From the NCBI GenBank assembly GCA_009103225.1, contig RHPI01001116.1, positions 482,463 through 514,156 on the forward strand: a stretch of 31,694 bases of DNA. Reading direction: 5' to 3'. This document shows positions 10,056-29,843 of the stretch, in pieces. Origin of the DNA: Chlorokybus atmophyticus. Taxonomy: Eukaryota; Plantae; Mesostigma and Chlorokybus algae. A program made the position numbers and the translations under genes. Position 1 is the first letter of the stretch. Every line of letters begins with the position of its first letter. The notes beneath the pieces were generated by a model. It made no database searches. It was not told the DNA's origin and worked only from the letters and a program-made list of their open reading frames with translations.

Positions 10056-11022
10056 AGCTGTTGACCATGTTGGATGACGCAATATCTACGTGTAATCAAT
10101 TAGCGTTAAATGGTAGAGTGGATAAGTTAAAACGAGGTTGAGTGGTGGCGGCATGTCTTTGGGGTATGGGGCCTGCCCCGACCTCGTACCGCAAAAAATG
10201 GCGGCCGTTTTAACCACTAACAGTGCTGCAATTGCACTGAATCGCTAGCAACTTTGGGTCGCCGTTGGCAAGCAGTTGCCGCCGAGATAGTTTTCAGCAT
10301 CTTTTATGCATCTTTGCAATGACTGGTCAGTCTGCTGCCATTTTCAGCAACGGCTGTTGTCACCTTTGCGATCCCATTTTATTAAATTCATGCGTGACCA
10401 AATGGTGGCCTAACGACGCGATTCTTTGTTTAGTAACGTCAAGGTAACTCAGGTTAGCATTATTTTAATGGTACTAACCTTGGCATTTTTTACTGAAAAT
10501 CTTAGCACGTACCGTGGCGTGAACGTTACGTTGAATACTAACACGTAACTGCAGGTTGCTAGCCATAATGCACCATTCTTGACCATTAGGTAGCGTTAGA
10601 TATCGTCCATTGCGCTCAATCAGCGTAATCTCAATCCAGTACAACGCCCTCTTTCACATAGAGTGCCCCCCCCAAATACAATTACCCCCATAAATTTTGA
10701 GGGGGCAATATGTTGGAAGGGGGGCACTGTGAACGGGTAAATACGGTATGCATAATTTACCACCATAAGTGTCCATGTGCACACCGTTTGTGCTCGTACT
10801 GTGTTTTATCAGCAAGTATGAGCAATATTGTGATGTTGGGATGTGCTCTGGACGGCCAAGATGTAGATCCAACGGCTTGAGATTGGTAGTCGCCGCCCAG
10901 CCAATGGGCGGCAGGCGGGACGCATACAGCCGCGCAGCCCGCCAGTTGCGGGTGCCTATGTGTGATGGGCCAATGATGGCCGTGTGGGGATACATGTGTG
11001 ATGTGCCGGCCGGCCCGACCAA
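10056..11022 (+). repeat. Dispersed ~1-kb non-coding repeat, copy A (inverted relative to 29005-29843)
   Basis: Collinear by eye with the reverse complement of 29005-29843, from GCTGTTGACCATG to GCCGGCCGGCCCGACCAA, with many substitutions and indels. Interrupted by a small MITE absent from the other copy. Confidence 0.85.
10642..10746. mobile_element. Degenerate pogo-like MITE nested in repeat copy A
   Basis: The right end reads TA|CCGTATTTACCCGTTCACAGTGCCCCC on the reverse strand. The left end after TA(10640-41) retains TTCAC..AGTGCCCCC. The segment is missing from copy B. Confidence 0.5.
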
Positions 11023-11433: not shown

Positions 11434-11594
11434 CACACAGAGTCTCCACAGTGTTCAATCTTGTTACTGACTATTGTCTCATTAGTTGCACGCAGCCAAT
11501 GAGGGGTAAATAGTTGGCTGGGTATGTTGGGCACAATGGATTGCATTGATTGGAATGCGTTCCTCTGCGGTAGCATGCGCTACAAGTCTGCCCA
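11434..11594. repeat. DIRS split repeat B (terminal copy)
   Basis: Direct repeat of 12045-12205; 9 differences, 8 of them transitions. Confidence 0.95.
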
Positions 11595-11961
11595 GCTGCA
11601 ACCCAGTTGGTGAAAGACAGTGAAATCGTGCGGTGCTCAAGACAACGTGTCCGCACCGTCCAATTCACCAACACGCGAAATTGTCAAGGCCGTCCACAAC
11701 AAGCTGTTGGATCTAGCAACAGATTGCGCTCGACCTCGATATATGTCAGATCGCGATCGCGAAAACACCGGTGTATACAGTGTGAGGGAATCAGGGTGGG
11801 TGGGATACGACACTGTTCACACGCCGGTGCTTGCCGCCGCCTCCGCCGATAGCCTTAGCGACAGGCACATGGATGGCGGGGCCATACGGCGGTTGTGGTC
11901 AACGTGTGCGCACAACGAGCTTGTGCGCACAAGGTGCTCAGCGATGGCTGGCGCACAAGGG

Positions 11962-12205
11962 GTGCGATACGGCAGGTAAATCCTCTACGGCATTAAATGT
12001 ATGCCCAGAGCCAGCCAATTGCATAGCAACTCTGTATGAAAGAACACACAGAGTCTTCACGGTGTTCAATCTTGTTACAGACTATTGTCTCATTGGTTGC
12101 ACGCAGCCAATGAGGGGCAAACAGCTGGCTGGGTATGTTGGGCACAATGGATTGCATTGATTGAAATGCATTCCTCTGCGGTAGCATGCGCTACAAGTCT
12201 GCCCA
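11962..12205. repeat. DIRS internal A+B junction (overlapping at CACACAGAG, 12045-12053)
   Basis: 11962-12053 matches 15611-15702, and 12045-12205 matches 11434-11594. Confidence 0.95.
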
Positions 12206-12384
12206 ACTTCACTTACATGCTTGAACAGAGCAAGCATGCTAACAGATGCCCAACATACTTGCAGTTTCGCACAAGAACTGCAAAGGCAAGCAGTGCAAGA
12301 GAACTGGCGAGCATTGCAATAAGCAGCACCCGCGTGGGATGTCAACACTGCACAAGCTCGCGATGAAGCAAAAGTTGCATTTAA

Positions 12385-13290
12385 ATGCGCGCGCAAGCCA
12401 TAGCACGCAACGGCAACAGTGCAACTCACACTCATCGCCAAGGCAAAGAGTGGAGCGAGTTCGTTGCTTACTTGCGCGCAATCGAAGTGGAAGTAAGTGA
12501 GGTTACACCCGCTGTAGTTGTTGCATACATAGAGGGTGCATGGCACAGCAGACATGGCAAGCATGGTCGCGTTACCACGGCCAGCGGGCAGCGCAGACTA
12601 TCTAGTCGCATTGTGCGCAACGCCGTCAGCAAGTTGTCCATGAGCTTTACCCAACTGCGATTTGGACAACATTGGGACAGCCATCAGCAGCGCGGCAACC
12701 CTTGCAAGCGGGCATCACCATACAACAAGCCCACCCGTTGGGGTTGGAAGACATGCGCAAGCTGCTCGCGCACATGGAGCTGCGCATCAGTGCTAGCAAC
12801 GGACCCCAAAAGGTGAGGTTTACTCAGTCTGCACTCGCACGCAAACTTGTGACACCCAGTCTATGACGCAGGTACTATTGATGCGGGATAGGCTAATCTT
12901 TATTTGCCTATGGTTATCGTGGCAACGCGGAGCGGAGGGGTGCAAGTTGCAACTGGAGAGCATTTCACAGCAAGCAGAGGTATGAGCACGATGTCTCATT
13001 GCCAATGCCACCGGCATCAACACCGTTTGATGCAGGCAACGTGCAACCGGGGTTGCTGAAGAATTACAAGTCCAGCCCTGCACCTAGCATCACCTTTGGC
13101 AATGGCGGGCTGGACCTTGAGTTAAACGAGGAGTTACAGCAGTTTCAAGCCACTGCTGCAGGGCACCACCTAGCAATCAAGTCAGGCTATGTATTTCGTG
13201 CAATGCATCAGAGCCAAAAGAGCTGGGTAGATGGCCCCCTTGGGCGGGACGCAGAGTACGCAAGCTTCATCAAGCATGCATAAGCATGCG
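12385..13290 (+). pseudogene. Tyrosine recombinase of the DIRS, antisense to RT, C-terminally truncated
   Basis: N-terminal domain EWSEFVAYL...VTPAVVVAYIEGAW...GNPC, then AHPLGLEDMRKLL. A candidate 59-nt GT-AG intron (12813-12871) joins PQK|VLLMRDRLI; after a frameshift comes LWLSWQRGAE (first catalytic Arg). No HxxR or Tyr motifs appear before the RT junction. Confidence 0.75.
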
Positions 13291-13294
13291 GAAT

Positions 13295-14425
13295 CCATGC
13301 TGCCCCTATAAGCCATCGCCAAGTAACACCTGTCTGCCTTGCGCGCAGGGACGTGGTGATAACCACTCTTCATGTCGAATGTCGACTGGTATGCACCCAC
13401 CCCCGTGTAGTGCAGAACATCAGTCAAGCGCTCGTAGTGAAAAGGAATGTGTTCTAAGTACAAATTGACGTACCGCAGATCCATGATCAATCTAGGCTTG
13501 GGCTGATCGACAACACCAATGCCGGTCACAACGGTGACGTCCTCACGTCTCACCTCCTCCACCGCACCTGTCTCTACCAGGCTGGCCAGCTCTGCACACA
13601 CGAAGTCCTCATGCTGCAAGCTGGAATCGCAATTGGACATGTGCAGTGGTGGTGGCAGATTCTGGGCCAGCATGGCGTCGACTTCGTACATGGCCAGGCC
13701 CTCCTTCAGCAGAGTGTTCTTCACCTGGACGCGCTTGCGTGCTGCTGCTCCCGCGGTGCCAACGAAGCGGAGGGGGTAGCCATCCTGGAACCACTTGAGC
13801 ACTCTGCGCGCCAGAGGGTTGCTAGTTGCTGCACACCACATGCGCCACGCCTCCATGTGCTAGCTCGGCATACCCGCAAATCTGCCCGCATCGTGCATGA
13901 ATGCTGCCAGCATGGTATGCCACTCATGCTCATCAATAGCTGGCAGCTCCGGTTGATCCCCCACCTGCTTCAAGTTGTCTAAAACTTGCTGCACCTTGTG
14001 GGCTTGCCGTGCTACTAGCCAGGGCGCAGATGCCCGCACAGCTGGTAGCTGCCAGCGTTGGTCATGTGCGGACAGCAAGCCAACCGTCAGTAGCGGCTGT
14101 TCGTCTAGAGCATCAAAGAATGCGTCGCTGTCCGCATGCACAGCTCGCGGCGAGTGCACGACACCTTCGTCATCGCAGGCCCTGTCACAGCGGCCAGCGG
14201 TAGTGCTGGCGACCGATAGTAGACCAGCAGCAGCAAGCTGCAGCTCAGCAGCGGAGGCATGTACGTGGCCAGCAGCACCGAGGCCAGGGTCAGGCGCTGG
14301 GTCTGCTGAATGTGCAGGTGCGACGGCGCAAGCGACGGCGCTGCCCGGTGGAGCAGATGCAACTGCAAGGTGACTCCCGCTCCCAACGGGGATACCCCTG
14401 GAGCTTGCAAAAGACCAGAATCACA
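13295..14425 (-). pseudogene. DIRS pol (RT N-terminal half), truncated after motif A
   Basis: FAGMPS*HMEAW...VLKWFQDGYPLRF...ELASLVETGAVEEV...KPRLIMDLRYVN...TFDMKSGYHHV...RCYLAMAYRG, with one in-frame TAG at 13860-62. No LPFG, YxDD or RNase H follows. Confidence 0.88.
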
Positions 14426-14961
14426 CACGCTACGCGCTGAACGCCCCCCCAGACAGCATGCACGCAGGCACATGCCAAGCAGGCGCTGACACATGCAATG
14501 CGCACTCACAGCAGCGACTAGCAGGGAAAAGAAATGTAATAATTGAACAGAACAAAGAGAGGTTGATGTAGCTGCTAGCATAAAGAACTAAGCACACGGA
14601 AAAGAATAGCAAGAAACAACGTGACGCCTAACTACAACACAAGTACTACGACTGCCCAAAGCGCAGCAGCAAAGCTCATGCGACGGCGGTTGTCGCCTCT
14701 ATTGTTGTTGCCATTGTTGTTGCCGTTGTTGCCACCGTAGGTGGTGTTGCCATAGGGCTGAGTCCTTTGCTGCCTGCCTGACCTGTGGTAGCCATCGTCG
14801 CTGCCAGGATAGGTGTTGTTGTAGTTGTTGTTGTTGCGCACAGGGCCAGGTGCAGGCCTTCAAGTTCTGCTGAGTGGCAGCGCGAATTAGACAGGCGTTG
14901 CGCTCGGCCTCTCGCTGCGCGAGACAGCCGGCTGCAGATGCAGCGTGCACATGCGCAGCTG

Positions 14962-15144
14962 CCCAGATGACGGGACAACCGGCTGACGAATAGGTTACCC
15001 AAGCAAGGCAACCCGAATAGCGGGACAACCTGCAACTGCACAGCTACCCGAATAACGGGACGGCTAGCTGAAGAACAGGACGAGCAAGCACAGTCGCCCG
15101 AATAGCGGGACAGCCGGCCGAGCTAGCTGCCCGAACAACGGGAC
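14962..15144. repeat. ~85-bp tandem repeat of CCCG-N5-CGGGAC mini-hairpins in the DIRS leader/gag region
   Basis: Units at 14962 (degenerate), 15012, 15047, 15097 and 15130; spacings 50, 35, 50, 33. Confidence 0.8.
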
Positions 15145-15610
15145 AACCGCTGACGACATCGTTTTACGGGTGTGCTTGCAGCCATCTGAGTGACGAGACA
15201 TAGGAAGGAAGTAGTGCGAAGGCGCATGCGTGACAGCCGGTGACGCCGACAGCTGATGAGGATGACGCTAGCGCTCTACCGCTGAGCTGCACGACCGCAT
15301 GCAGGGACAAGTGCGAAAGCACCGTTCCCAGTAGCTAGCACAGGACACTAGGCTAGGTACGCAGCTACACAGCAGGCTACAAGCAGTTGCGGGTAGCGGC
15401 CCTGGCAGCTACGACATGCACGGCCATTTCATACAAGGCTCAAAGGTTGGGAACAAAGAAAATAGTAATAACATGAAACATACACCACCTTTGTTTACAT
15501 ACCTCAACTCGTTTTTCCCCGGCTCCATCGCCGCATGCGATTTCTTCTTTCCAAAGATGGCGAGCACCTCTTCAATGAGGAGACAACCCTCACCACCGGT
15601 GCACGTGCAC

Positions 15611-15702
15611 GTGCGATACGGCAGGTAAGTCCTCTACGGCATTAAATGTATGCCCAGAGCCAGCCTATTGCATAGCAACTCTATATGAAGGAACACACAG
15701 AG
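15611..15702. repeat. DIRS split repeat A (terminal copy)
   Basis: Direct repeat of 11962-12053, ending in CACACAGAG. Confidence 0.95.
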
Positions 15703-23774: not shown

Positions 23775-25920
<2,146 letters not shown>

Positions 25921-25924
<4 letters not shown>

Positions 25925-26362
25925 CGCTCACAACACCCGCGTGAGTGACGCTGGTGCGCCTGTAATGGAACTGAACAGTCCATGTCATGACATGACCTTG
26001 CCCATTCATAGGGTTGCCAATTGGATGTTACAGAACGCACGCGGGAAAAAGCAGCACGGTAAGCCGCCGGCATGATGATGCCGATAAGTTATGCCGTTCC
26101 GTACCATGCAGCAGCTTAGTTTGCAGTCTAACCTCGTTATGTGCATACCATCGGGTCAACAACACCCGAGTGAGTGACGCTGGTGCGCCTGTCATGGGTC
26201 TGACAGTCCATTATCATGAAAAATGAACTTGCCATTCATGCCAATTGGATGTTACGCAACGCGGAAAAAAGCAGCACGGTATGCCGCTGGCATGATGATG
26301 CTGTTCGGTACTATGCGGCAGCTTAGTTTGCAATCTAACCTCGTCGGCGCATACCATCGGGC
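25921..26362. repeat. Tandem duplication (~227 and ~206 bp) of the nucleosidase 5' flank
   Basis: Two diverged copies of CAACACCCG.GTGAGTGACGCTGGTGCGCCTGT...GCATACCATCGG; CCATCG occurs at 25921, 26148 and 26354. Confidence 0.88.
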
Positions 26363-28361: not shown

Positions 28362-28882
28362 TGTAACGGGAAGGTACATTAAGTAACCACAACTCGATCA
28401 TAAAAGCACCAAGTGTTTTATGGTTGAATGGGCTGTAACATTGGTCATCGGAGCTTGAGACCCGAGTTCGATTCCTGCCTTGCACACACGAATTTCGTGG
28501 TCGTTGTTTCTCGATCTAATAATATTGTAAATGGTCACTTCATAAGTGGCATCATCGATGGGTCGCGACTTGCTTAATGGCGGTTGCACCGACGTTCAAT
28601 TGGCGCTGCAGGCAAAACCTGCCTGTCGCGATGCGATCGTTGAAACCGGCAGCGGTGCGCTATGCGCGCGTTAACCGGTATGGGCCTAAATTGGCCGGTC
28701 CTTGACCATGGGGCCGGTGCCTGACCCAACAAACCCCTGGGATAATTCCCCAGCTGAGCATACGCAGCTGTCGAGGACGTCAGCGTTCGAAAGTGGGGGG
28801 GAATGTAACGGGAAGGTACATTAATTAAATTACCACAAATCGACCATAAAAGCACCAAGTCTTTTATGGTCGAGTGGGCTGT
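28362..28882 (+). mobile_element. TRIM-like miniature LTR retroelement, 3' LTR truncated
   Basis: 5' LTR TG...CA at 28362-28598 (237 bp), then AT, then PBS-like TGGCGCTGCAGGCA (28601-14), a 205-bp non-coding interior and a G7AA polypurine tract. A second LTR starts TGTAACGGGAAGGTACATTAA at 28804 and is cut off at 28882. Confidence 0.72.
28413..28484 (+). promoter_or_regulatory. tRNA-derived Pol III A-box/B-box unit inside the LTR
   Basis: TGGTTGAATGG at 28421 (TGGTCGAGTGG in the second LTR) and GAGTTCGATTCC at 28464-75, at tRNA-like spacing. Cloverleaf stems are degenerate, so this is not called a tRNA gene. Confidence 0.6.
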
Positions 28883-29004: not shown

Positions 29005-29843
29005 TTGGTCGGGCCGGCCGGCCTGTCGGCATTCAACCTACATCACATCCCGCGCCATAGGGCCATCACACGGTACCCGGGCTGCGCGGCAGTATGTGCG
29101 GCCCGCCTGCTTCTCATTGGCTAGGCGGCGAGAACAAGCGTTACACCGTTAGATCTGTTCAAAAACGATCCTGGCCGTCCAAAGCACATCCAATTGTTAA
29201 AACGCATGCCAATAAATGTACAATTGAGCACAGTTCTGCATACGTGGCCGCTTATGGCTGCATGTTGATCATTTAAATGTGTTACAGTAATAATATTGAT
29301 AAATATGCTGCAATATGATGCAATATGGCTAGCAACCTGCAGTTAAGTGTTACAAAACTTAATCCAACGTAATGTTCACGCCACGGTACGTGCCAACATA
29401 TTCAGTACGTAATGCCAAGGTTACCATCATTAAAATAATGCTAACCTGAATTACCTTCATGTTAAGATTCAACTAAACGAAAAATCGCATCGTTAGGCCA
29501 CCATTTGGTCACGCATGAATTTGATCAAATGGGATCGCAACGGTGACAACAGCCGTTGCTGAAAAAGGCAACAAAGTGGCCAATCATTGCAAAGATGCTG
29601 AAAACAATCTCTGCAGCAACTGCTTACCAACGGCGACCAAAAGTCGCTAGGGATTCGGTGCAATTGCAGCACAGTCAGTGGTTAAAACGGCCGCGTTTTT
29701 GGCGGTACGAGGTCGGGGCAGGCCCCATACCCCAAAGACATGCCGCCACTACTCACCCTCGTTCTAACTGATCCACTCTACCATGTAACGCTAATTGATT
29801 ACACGCTATAGTTACTGCGTCATCAAACATGGTCAACAGCCGA
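29005..29843 (-). repeat. Dispersed non-coding repeat, copy B (inverted relative to 10056-11022)
   Basis: See copy A. Confidence 0.85.

Follow-up and report, generated by a model that had tools for sequence, protein, structure and literature searches.

Nine bases, CACACAGAG, stand at both ends of a 4,269-bp element (11434-15702) and once more at a joint between its internal repeats. We asked whether this arrangement records the integration of a circular intermediate at a chromosomal site that already carried the same bases and, if so, how long an identity between circle and target would be required. All positions refer to the window, the whole stretch of 31,694 nucleotides of Chlorokybus atmophyticus DNA that was analyzed.

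The element is a dead PAT-type retrotransposon

The element is a single old, dead, and internally deleted copy of a PAT-type retrotransposon of the DIRS order. Its repeats are arranged along the plus strand of the window as follows.

11434-11600, plus strand: repeat A1, about 161-167 bp, the 3'-terminal repeat in the minus-strand coding orientation
11601-11961, no strand assigned: spacer x, a unique 361 bp between A1 and B1, with nothing similar elsewhere in the window
11962-12053, plus strand: repeat B1, 92 bp, its last bases being the internal 9-mer
12045-12211, plus strand: repeat A2, the second copy of A
14941-15110, no strand assigned: tandem duplication inside the element with an 85-bp unit (71% identity)
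15611-15702, plus strand: repeat B2, the 5' terminus in coding orientation, its last bases being the right-end 9-mer

The two copies of A (11434-11600 and 12045-12211) are 93% identical (161 nucleotides at 94.4% by blastn), and those of B (11962-12053 and 15611-15702) are 96% identical. Together they form the split direct repeats A1...B1A2...B2 with abutting internal copies that distinguish PAT-type elements. As also expected for this type, there is no target-site duplication apart from the junction sequence: the 9-mer flanking the element is the 9-mer of the internal junction. Neither end was found in inverted form at the opposite end or in the interior, so that the inverted terminal repeats plus internal complementary region of DIRS1-like elements are lacking. 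The name "DIRS" used in the earlier note is therefore loose for this element. A blastn comparison of the element and 300-bp flanks with the whole window returned the A and B pairs alone, without further copies of either repeat or of the body, and the open reading frames of the flanks gave no informative Pfam matches. Neither the 28-nt conserved motif of B nor an alignment of four sequences retrieved any match or related locus from metagenome contigs or viral contigs.

Three stretches of the element have coding character.

13260-13853, minus strand: N-terminal half of a reverse transcriptase (RT), reaching the D-x-K-S-G-Y-H-H-V motif and ending before the YxDD region
13863-14420, minus strand: gag/pre-RT reading frame, upstream of the RT and in the same frame
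12385-13280, plus strand: possible tyrosine-recombinase remnant, antisense to the RT and tail-to-tail with it, catalytic part absent

In an exhaustive search of 1.84 billion representatives, the RT piece was 35-38% identical to proteins carrying Pfam RVT_1 (E 7e-25). These relatives are about 800 amino acids long, and neither an integrase nor a protease domain was detected in them. Since no better identity was obtained, the family or the genome is absent from that library; a word search with the RT piece likewise returned no proteins of the same family. RT homology stops near 13260, at an internal deletion near 13260-13280, and a single in-frame stop (13860-13862) separates the RT from the gag/pre-RT frame. 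The plus-strand reading frame may be the remnant of a recombinase N terminus. It consists of a core-binding-like N-terminal piece (12439-12729) followed by at least three frame changes, with later pieces at 12606-12863, 12797-12982, and 12897-13280. A protein language-model look-alike search, which offers a lead only, placed 12385-12813 with Phage_int_SAM clusters at 0.96 and gave no look-alike for the second piece. Nothing was found for the candidate in Pfam (E up to 10), by PDB sequence search, or by word search, and its single-sequence AlphaFold model (pLDDT 57) yielded nothing below E 0.6 in Foldseek. The C terminus of the RT, RNase H, the methyltransferase-like domain (MT) that follows RNase H in PAT-type elements, and the catalytic domain of the recombinase, which would hold the R-H-R-Y residues, are deleted from this copy.

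Read along the minus strand, and with A and B named by that coding orientation, the order becomes A1 (92), gag, RT, the deletion, the antisense recombinase remnant, B1 (167) abutting A2 (92), x (361), and B2 (167). PAT-type elements with an inverted recombinase, namely kangaroo of Volvox and a "novel" form of Daphnia pulex, have the same split direct repeats (PMC4157794), and in our element the candidate recombinase is antisense to the RT as well. The internal repeats of kangaroo lie between MT and the inverted recombinase gene (PMC4157794), whereas here they (11962-12211) lie beyond the candidate remnant (12385-13280) and adjoin the terminal repeat. This position agrees with that of the Daphnia pulex form, in which the internal repeats lie past the recombinase and directly precede the 3' terminal repeat (PMC4157794). 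The RT sets our copy apart, being just 35-38% identical to the best library proteins. A limited literature search found no report on the length of the junction overlap in PAT-type elements.

The nine-base identity ends exactly at its edges

The 9-mer occupies three places in the element.

11434-11442, plus strand: left-end 9-mer CACACAGAG, the first nine bases of repeat A1
12045-12053, plus strand: internal 9-mer, overlap of the end of B1 with the start of A2, the presumed template of the circle junction
15694-15702, plus strand: right-end 9-mer, the last bases of repeat B2

In the repeat alignment, the internal copy comprises precisely the bases shared by B1 and A2, being the last nine of the one and the first nine of the other. 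Immediately outside the 9-mer the element ends differ from this junction, with G instead of A at base -1 on the left and A instead of T at base +1 on the right. Further out, the left flank agrees with the junction at 3, 3, 3, and 4 of the first 10, 15, 20, and 30 bases, and the right flank at 3, 4, 5, and 6, which is chance level on both sides. The earlier note had described the 9-mer at both ends and at the internal overlap, with identity to the junction ending at its edges; the exact matches at 11434, 12045, and 15694 and the mismatched neighboring bases confirm this description.

An exact-match count over the plus strand gave four occurrences of CACACAGAG against 0.52 expected (at least four in 1 of 100 shuffles). 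The fourth, at 24737-24745, is unrelated to the element and lies in unique sequence upstream of a (GA)n array; a link between the 9-mer and this array was rejected on account of that position.

An inverted repeat at the internal junction

The junction contains an inverted repeat that has the 9-mer plus one base, the first following base of A, as its right arm.

12029-12054, no strand assigned: 10-6-10 inverted repeat of ACTCTGTATG, spacer AAAGAA, and CACACAGAGT, 9/10 complementary

This feature goes beyond the description in the earlier note. The chance of finding such a partner within 45 nt is 0.011 with shuffled flanks and 0.014 over all 10-mers of the window (p about 0.01). At the right end of the element the repeat is down to 7/10, owing to two G-to-A changes and to a tenth position that is occupied by flanking sequence. 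Centered on the 9-mer itself, strict symmetry amounts to 3/10. A stable hairpin structure was rejected, as the fold of the junction is no better than that of shuffled sequences (z -0.78), and the target flanks have no arm-like similarity to the junction.

Simple tyrosine-recombinase sites consist of inverted arms around a short spacer, and phage att sites share a common core. The junction resembles such sites in its 10-6-10 geometry and in that element and target share a run of identical bases, but differs from them in that the identity falls into an arm and not into the spacer, and in that the target has no second arm. Arms of 11-13 bp and spacers of 6-8 bp are typical of simple sites (PMC3212892).

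Proposed integration of a circle at a matching chromosomal site

We favor, with a probability of roughly 0.5, that the circle junction (B-9mer-A) recombined with a chromosomal site already holding the 9-mer, through a tyrosine recombinase that the family presumably uses. The internal B-A joint would act as a template for joining the cDNA ends, and the joined ends would close a circle in which one CACACAGAG links B to A. A recombinase supplied by an intact copy of the family would then carry out a reciprocal crossover between this joint and a chromosomal site with the same bases, leaving one 9-mer at each end, one of them of target origin, and no target-site duplication. The predicted pre-insertion site is ...GAGCATTAG-CACACAGAG-ACAGCGTG... 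Since a crossover at matching bases leaves one 9-mer per end, the 9-mer would delimit the stretch of strand exchange.

Several observations argue for this reading. The three 9-mers lie exactly at the boundaries of A and B with only chance-level identity outside, and the crossover point falls on an arm of an inverted repeat with the geometry of a simple tyrosine-recombinase site. Moreover, the internal template runs unbroken from B into A, so that ends exactly at the edges of the 9-mer seem to require cutting or crossover at a specific site. The RVT_1-type relatives of the minus-strand frame, in which no integrase domain turned up, and the likeness of the plus-strand frame to recombinase core-binding domains in language-model features point the same way, as does the low probability of a 9-bp overlap if little or no identity were required. 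Other observations argue against it. The best inverted repeat has the 9-mer in its arm and not in its spacer, which does not fit a textbook crossover inside the 9-mer, and at 24737-24746 ten bases that match the junction arm stand unoccupied. In addition, the target flanks lack arm-like similarity to the junction, the Pfam, PDB, word, and fold searches for a recombinase in this copy were blank, and the case is built on a single copy.

The same filled site would result if both 9-mers had been brought in by the element, that is, if a linear mobile DNA started and ended with CACACAGAG and entered a target without the 9-mer, for which the pre-insertion site is predicted to be ...GAGCATTAG-ACAGCGTG... 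The 9-mer does pair with the end of B (9/10, with a loop of 6 nt), and a B-end hairpin of ACTCTGTATG-AAAGAA-CACACAGAG could self-prime second-strand synthesis. The cDNA of DIRS-1 is mostly linear and single-stranded, and priming from a terminal hairpin has been suggested (PMC7192593). Nevertheless, we consider such terminal redundancy unlikely, although it is the most serious of the competing explanations. The template is continuous through B-9mer-A, which leaves the exact stop of a linear molecule at both outer edges unexplained; a fill-in duplication is not what a recombinase leaves behind; and both the unremarkable junction fold and the decay of the right-end hairpin to 7/10 speak against a functional hairpin.

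The favored crossover is in essence the published integration model for DIRS1-like elements, in which the internal joint recombines with an identical genomic sequence at a 3-bp circular junction (PMC3266345, PMC7192593). As in those elements, the end-to-end joint is recorded internally, the bases of the joint are repeated at both ends, and there is no target-site duplication. In contrast, the overlap of DIRS1-like elements measures 3 bp (usually NTT) and their repeats are inverted terminal ones, combined with an internal complementary region, whereas our copy has split direct repeats and an overlap of 9 bp. The 3-bp circular junction model is reportedly also credited to Cappello (1985) and to Goodwin and Poulter. 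The reciprocal crossover put forward in the earlier note thus agrees with the structure of the filled site, but its mechanism has already been published for DIRS elements, and element-borne 9-mers would produce the same structure. Therefore, only the length of the identity would be new, and the finding is best taken as a lead, from a single dead copy that agrees with the textbook model but has an identity of unusual length.

How long an identity is required?

If no identity were required, an apparent overlap of at least 9 bp would arise with a probability of 3e-5. This value rises to 1.3e-3 (about 1 in 750 insertions) for a requirement of 3 bp, 4.6e-3 for 4 bp, 1.6e-2 for 5 bp, and 5e-2 for 6 bp. 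Of 7,878 placements anchored on a 3-mer elsewhere in the window, 7 extended to at least 9 bp, all at one site. Because nine identical bases are improbable under a 3-bp rule, a longer requirement is favored, most likely of about 6-9 bp, which would be typical of the overlap regions of tyrosine recombinases and not of the 3 bp of DIRS1-like elements.

It could also be that only 3-5 bp are needed, as in DIRS1-like elements and Cryptons, and that the other bases of the 9-mer match by chance at this one target. Published overlaps are indeed short, with 3 bp in DIRS1-like elements (PMC3266345) and 4-6 bp in Cryptons (PMC3212892). The terminal repeats of Cryptons have been interpreted as recombination substrates (PMC3212892, PMC13465315). 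Cryptons and Starships resemble our element in that their short terminal direct repeats are interpreted as microhomology between circle and target and not as a target-site duplication (PMC3212892, PMC13465315), but these DNA transposons have neither an RT nor split repeats. The length argument, in turn, comes from a single copy that was chosen post hoc, for its striking look, among many DIRS-type candidates of the genome, and with ~100 DIRS-type copies screened, a 1-in-750 extension is not negligible. Given the probabilities above, we nevertheless regard a short requirement as improbable. Thus, the longer core proposed in the earlier note stands insofar as the identity far exceeds chance for requirements of 0-3 bp, but one old, dead copy picked as striking cannot establish a need for all nine bases.

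The inverted repeat suggests yet another role for the 9-mer, as a recombinase-binding arm shared by element and target. Strands would then be exchanged across the 6-bp spacer of the 10-6-10 palindrome despite its heterology (AAAGAA in the element, CATTAG in the target), with the target recognized via one good half-site and the heteroduplex resolved by replication. The geometry of the repeat agrees with this, the left breakpoint falls exactly on the boundary between spacer and right arm, and the target spacer on the left together with the element spacer on the right would represent one daughter strand of such a heteroduplex. However, most tyrosine recombinases do not tolerate heterology in the spacer, the would-be left arm of the target matches at only 1/10 positions, and the inverted repeat itself reaches only p about 0.01. 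We rate this explanation marginally below a short requirement.

A single crossover by host homologous or microhomology-mediated recombination, joining a cDNA circle to a site that happens to match it over 9 bp, would need no site-specific enzyme. An A...BA...B copy would arise from a crossover anywhere within the duplicated 250-bp B-A segment of the circle, and geometry by itself is therefore no proof of a fixed site. Since 9 bp are very short for homologous recombination and the coincidence with a palindrome arm argues otherwise, this route is very improbable. Finally, although identical direct repeats on both sides of an element could suggest a 9-bp target-site duplication from staggered cleavage, we dismiss this origin almost entirely, because the internal B-A joint carries the same 9-mer once, which would otherwise be a 4^-9 coincidence, and because Pfam searches revealed no integrase or transposase remnant in the element.

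Implications for target choice in DIRS-order elements

To our knowledge, the sole sequence evidence on target choice in the DIRS order has been the 3-bp overlap in DIRS1-like families. The specificity of DIRS recombinases has had no experimental investigation to date (PMC7192593). A far-reaching interpretation of our data is that the PAT-type family integrates in a phage-like manner, its recombinase needing a defined 9-10-bp sequence in the chromosome, CACACAGAG(T), which forms one arm of a palindromic junction site. We consider this possible but rather doubtful. If true, it would represent a eukaryotic retrotransposon with real att-like, sequence-specific targeting, whose core has three times the length described for DIRS1-like elements. 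If the family needs 6-9 identical bases, its targets would be predictable and could be listed genome-wide, and it would lend itself well to a plasmid integration assay. A green-lineage genome would then provide a natural example of a Cre/Xer-like enzyme that carries out site-specific retrotransposition.

Nine-base identity at the ends and the internal junction

The 9-mer CACACAGAG was found at four sites on the plus strand of the window (11434, 12045, 15694, and 24737; 0.52 expected), a number reached in only 1 of 100 shuffles. The first three belong to the two repeat pairs of the element.

Repeat pairs of the element
A1 11434-11600 vs A2 12045-12211: 93% identity over 167 nt; 94.4% over 161 nt (blastn)
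B1 11962-12053 vs B2 15611-15702: 96% identity

Since the same nine bases end B1 and open A2, the two repeats overlap in exactly the internal 9-mer. The base preceding the 9-mer at the left end mismatches the internal copy, and so does the base following it at the right end. Further outward, matches to the junction are at chance level both for the left flank (3/10 and 4/30) and the right flank (3/10 and 6/30). The earlier note, which had placed the 9-mer at both ends and the internal junction with identity stopping at its edges, was correct to the base.

The fourth site (24737-24746) is the sole further occurrence of CACACAGAGT in the window, an unoccupied 10-bp match to the junction arm without insertion. 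The sequence around it is unique, and a nearly perfect (GA)n microsatellite (24760-25051, ~290 bp, one N at 24843) lies shortly downstream; the repeat search scored this array as 37 overlapping copies at 8-nt spacing.

Layout and decay of the element

The element (11434-15702, 4,269 bp) is a decayed retrotransposon with its coding strand on minus.

Coding features of the element
~14420 to 13185, minus: gag/RT-side frame, one in-frame stop (13860-13862)
13182-13856, minus: last ORF of this frame, 224 aa
12385-12816, plus: candidate recombinase ORF, 143 aa, tail-to-tail with RT

Read in coding orientation, which exchanges the letters A and B, the element runs A1(92)-ORFs-antisense recombinase remnant-B1(167)A2(92)-x(361)-B2(167), where x is a 361-bp spacer. 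This is the PAT-type split-direct-repeat plan. The internal repeats neighbour the 3' repeat, an arrangement shared with the 'novel' Daphnia form but not with kangaroo (PMC4157794). In contrast to DIRS1-like elements, no inverted terminal repeats were found in this element, which is therefore not DIRS1-like.

The 224-aa ORF matches proteins carrying Pfam RVT_1 (E down to 7e-25, 35-38% identity) over the pre-RT region and the first RT motifs, and the alignment ends past the D-x-K-S-G-Y-H-H-V motif, near 13260. Relatives ~800-990 aa long carry RVT_1; two of them also match RNase H-type domains weakly (E 0.036, 0.057), and neither an integrase nor a protease domain was found. By its features, the 143-aa ORF is similar to the SAM-like core-binding domain present in tyrosine recombinases (look-alike score 0.96, no more than a lead); its identity as a recombinase was not supported by Pfam, PDB, word search, Foldseek, or a single-sequence fold (pLDDT 57). 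At least three frame changes follow downstream of it, and the candidate recombinase sequence stops near 13280. Missing from the copy are the RT C-terminus, RNase H, any methyltransferase, and the recombinase catalytic domain, a loss that an internal deletion near 13260-13280 would explain. The repeat partners diverge by 4-6%, mostly by transitions, and the insertion would be old if they were identical at insertion. In coding orientation, an 85-bp tandem duplication within the element (14941-15110, 71% identity) precedes the gag-like frame.

The window holds no second copy of the element. The family was not found in protein collections with RT and recombinase queries, and two metagenome and two viral scans yielded no DNA of relatives. 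DIRS and Ngaro families have been reported from Chara braunii and Klebsormidium nitens (bioRxiv 10.1101/835561). We regard the element as a new, very divergent, dead representative of a known retrotransposon type.

The window contains other repeats. Inverted repeats of ~450 bp (10089-10536 and 29362-29805; 82-95% complementary, 19 kb apart) enclose the element and much else, the left one stopping ~900 bp before the insertion; they could be opposite-orientation copies of another repeat or mark the limits of a large element. At 25930-26344, three segments of 43-47 nt each recur at a spacing of 207-229 nt (89-93% identity), suggesting a tandem duplication of roughly 220 bp. Two direct repeats of 59 nt (88%, 446 nt apart) are located at 28378-28882.

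Proposed crossover between circle and target

If the ends were joined, the circle would read D-x-D-body, with the 250-bp segment D (B-9mer-A) present twice. Wherever in D a crossover took place, the product would be an A...BA...B copy with its ends meeting at an 'internal junction'. Because any crossover within D gives the same layout, the A/B boundary would be set by the crossover and not pre-fixed. Geometry alone proves no fixed site, a point absent from the earlier note, which had proposed tyrosine-recombinase crossover with a chromosomal 9-mer at a longer, att-like core. For DIRS1-like elements, the published mechanism is recombination of a 3-bp circular junction with an identical stretch of the genome, leaving no TSD (PMC3266345, PMC7192593); the mechanism proposed in the earlier note is this one, with an overlap of 9 bp in place of 3 bp. 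The 4-6-bp terminal repeats of Cryptons are interpreted likewise (PMC3212892, PMC13465315). Base-level junction overlaps of split-repeat elements are not given in PMC4157794, PMC6681497, PMC8547959, or PMC9210276.

We computed the probability of an identity of 9 bp or more under a model in which c identical bases are needed for integration and further matches arise by chance.

Probability of 9 bp or more for each required identity
c=0: 3e-5
c=3: 1.3e-3
c=4: 4.6e-3
c=5: 1.6e-2
c=6: 5e-2
c=7: 0.16
c=8: 0.44

As an empirical check, all 3-mer anchored sites in the window outside the element were used: 7 of 7,878 placements gave an identity of at least nine bases, all seven from the 24737 site. As a single draw, the identity favours a requirement of ~6-9 bp over the DIRS1-like 3 bp. 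This argument is weakened by a selection effect, since the one copy at hand was picked for its striking look. The crossover interpretation is supported in part, the identity being improbable if 3 bp were needed, but its mechanism was already published, and a requirement of 9 bp is unproven.

CACACAGAGT at the junction (12045-12054; the 9-mer extended by the opening base of A) is complementary at 9 of 10 positions to ACTCTGTATG (12029-12038), from which it is separated by the 6-nt spacer AAAGAA. Shuffled flanks offered an equally good partner within 45 nt in 1.1% of cases, and when all window 10-mers were tried the share was 1.4%. The geometry resembles that of simple tyrosine-recombinase sites, for which 11-13-bp arms and a 6-8-bp spacer are given (PMC3212892). 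The inverted repeat supports a specific site, yet the 9-mer falls in the arm and not in the spacer. Either the 9-mer would be the exchange region and the palindrome would have another role, e.g., as a terminal hairpin, or the 9-mer would be a binding half-site common to the target, with exchange across a heterologous spacer. The left breakpoint coincides exactly with the spacer/arm boundary, and the spacers seen, CATTAG at the left end and AAGGAA at the right end, would be as expected from one heteroduplex daughter. A second short inverted repeat at the junction, GAACAC / GTGTTC (12042-12047 and 12062-12067, 14 nt apart), is preserved in A1/B2 as well as in A2/B1; its 6 bp are too few for significance.

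Both 9-mers could instead be element-borne, forming either a terminal redundancy or the arm that closes a hairpin at the end of linear cDNA (compare PMC7192593). The filled site would be identical, but the empty site would lack the 9-mer, whereas both forms of the crossover model predict an empty site with one 9-mer. We rate terminal redundancy lower because the internal template is unbroken through B-9mer-A, with nothing to end a linear molecule at the outer edges of the 9-mer, and because the junction folds no better than shuffles. A TSD reading of the terminal 9-mers is excluded by the copy at the internal junction. For crossover between circle and target, a 9-bp requirement, unproven as it is, would if true represent a quantitative variant of the known model.
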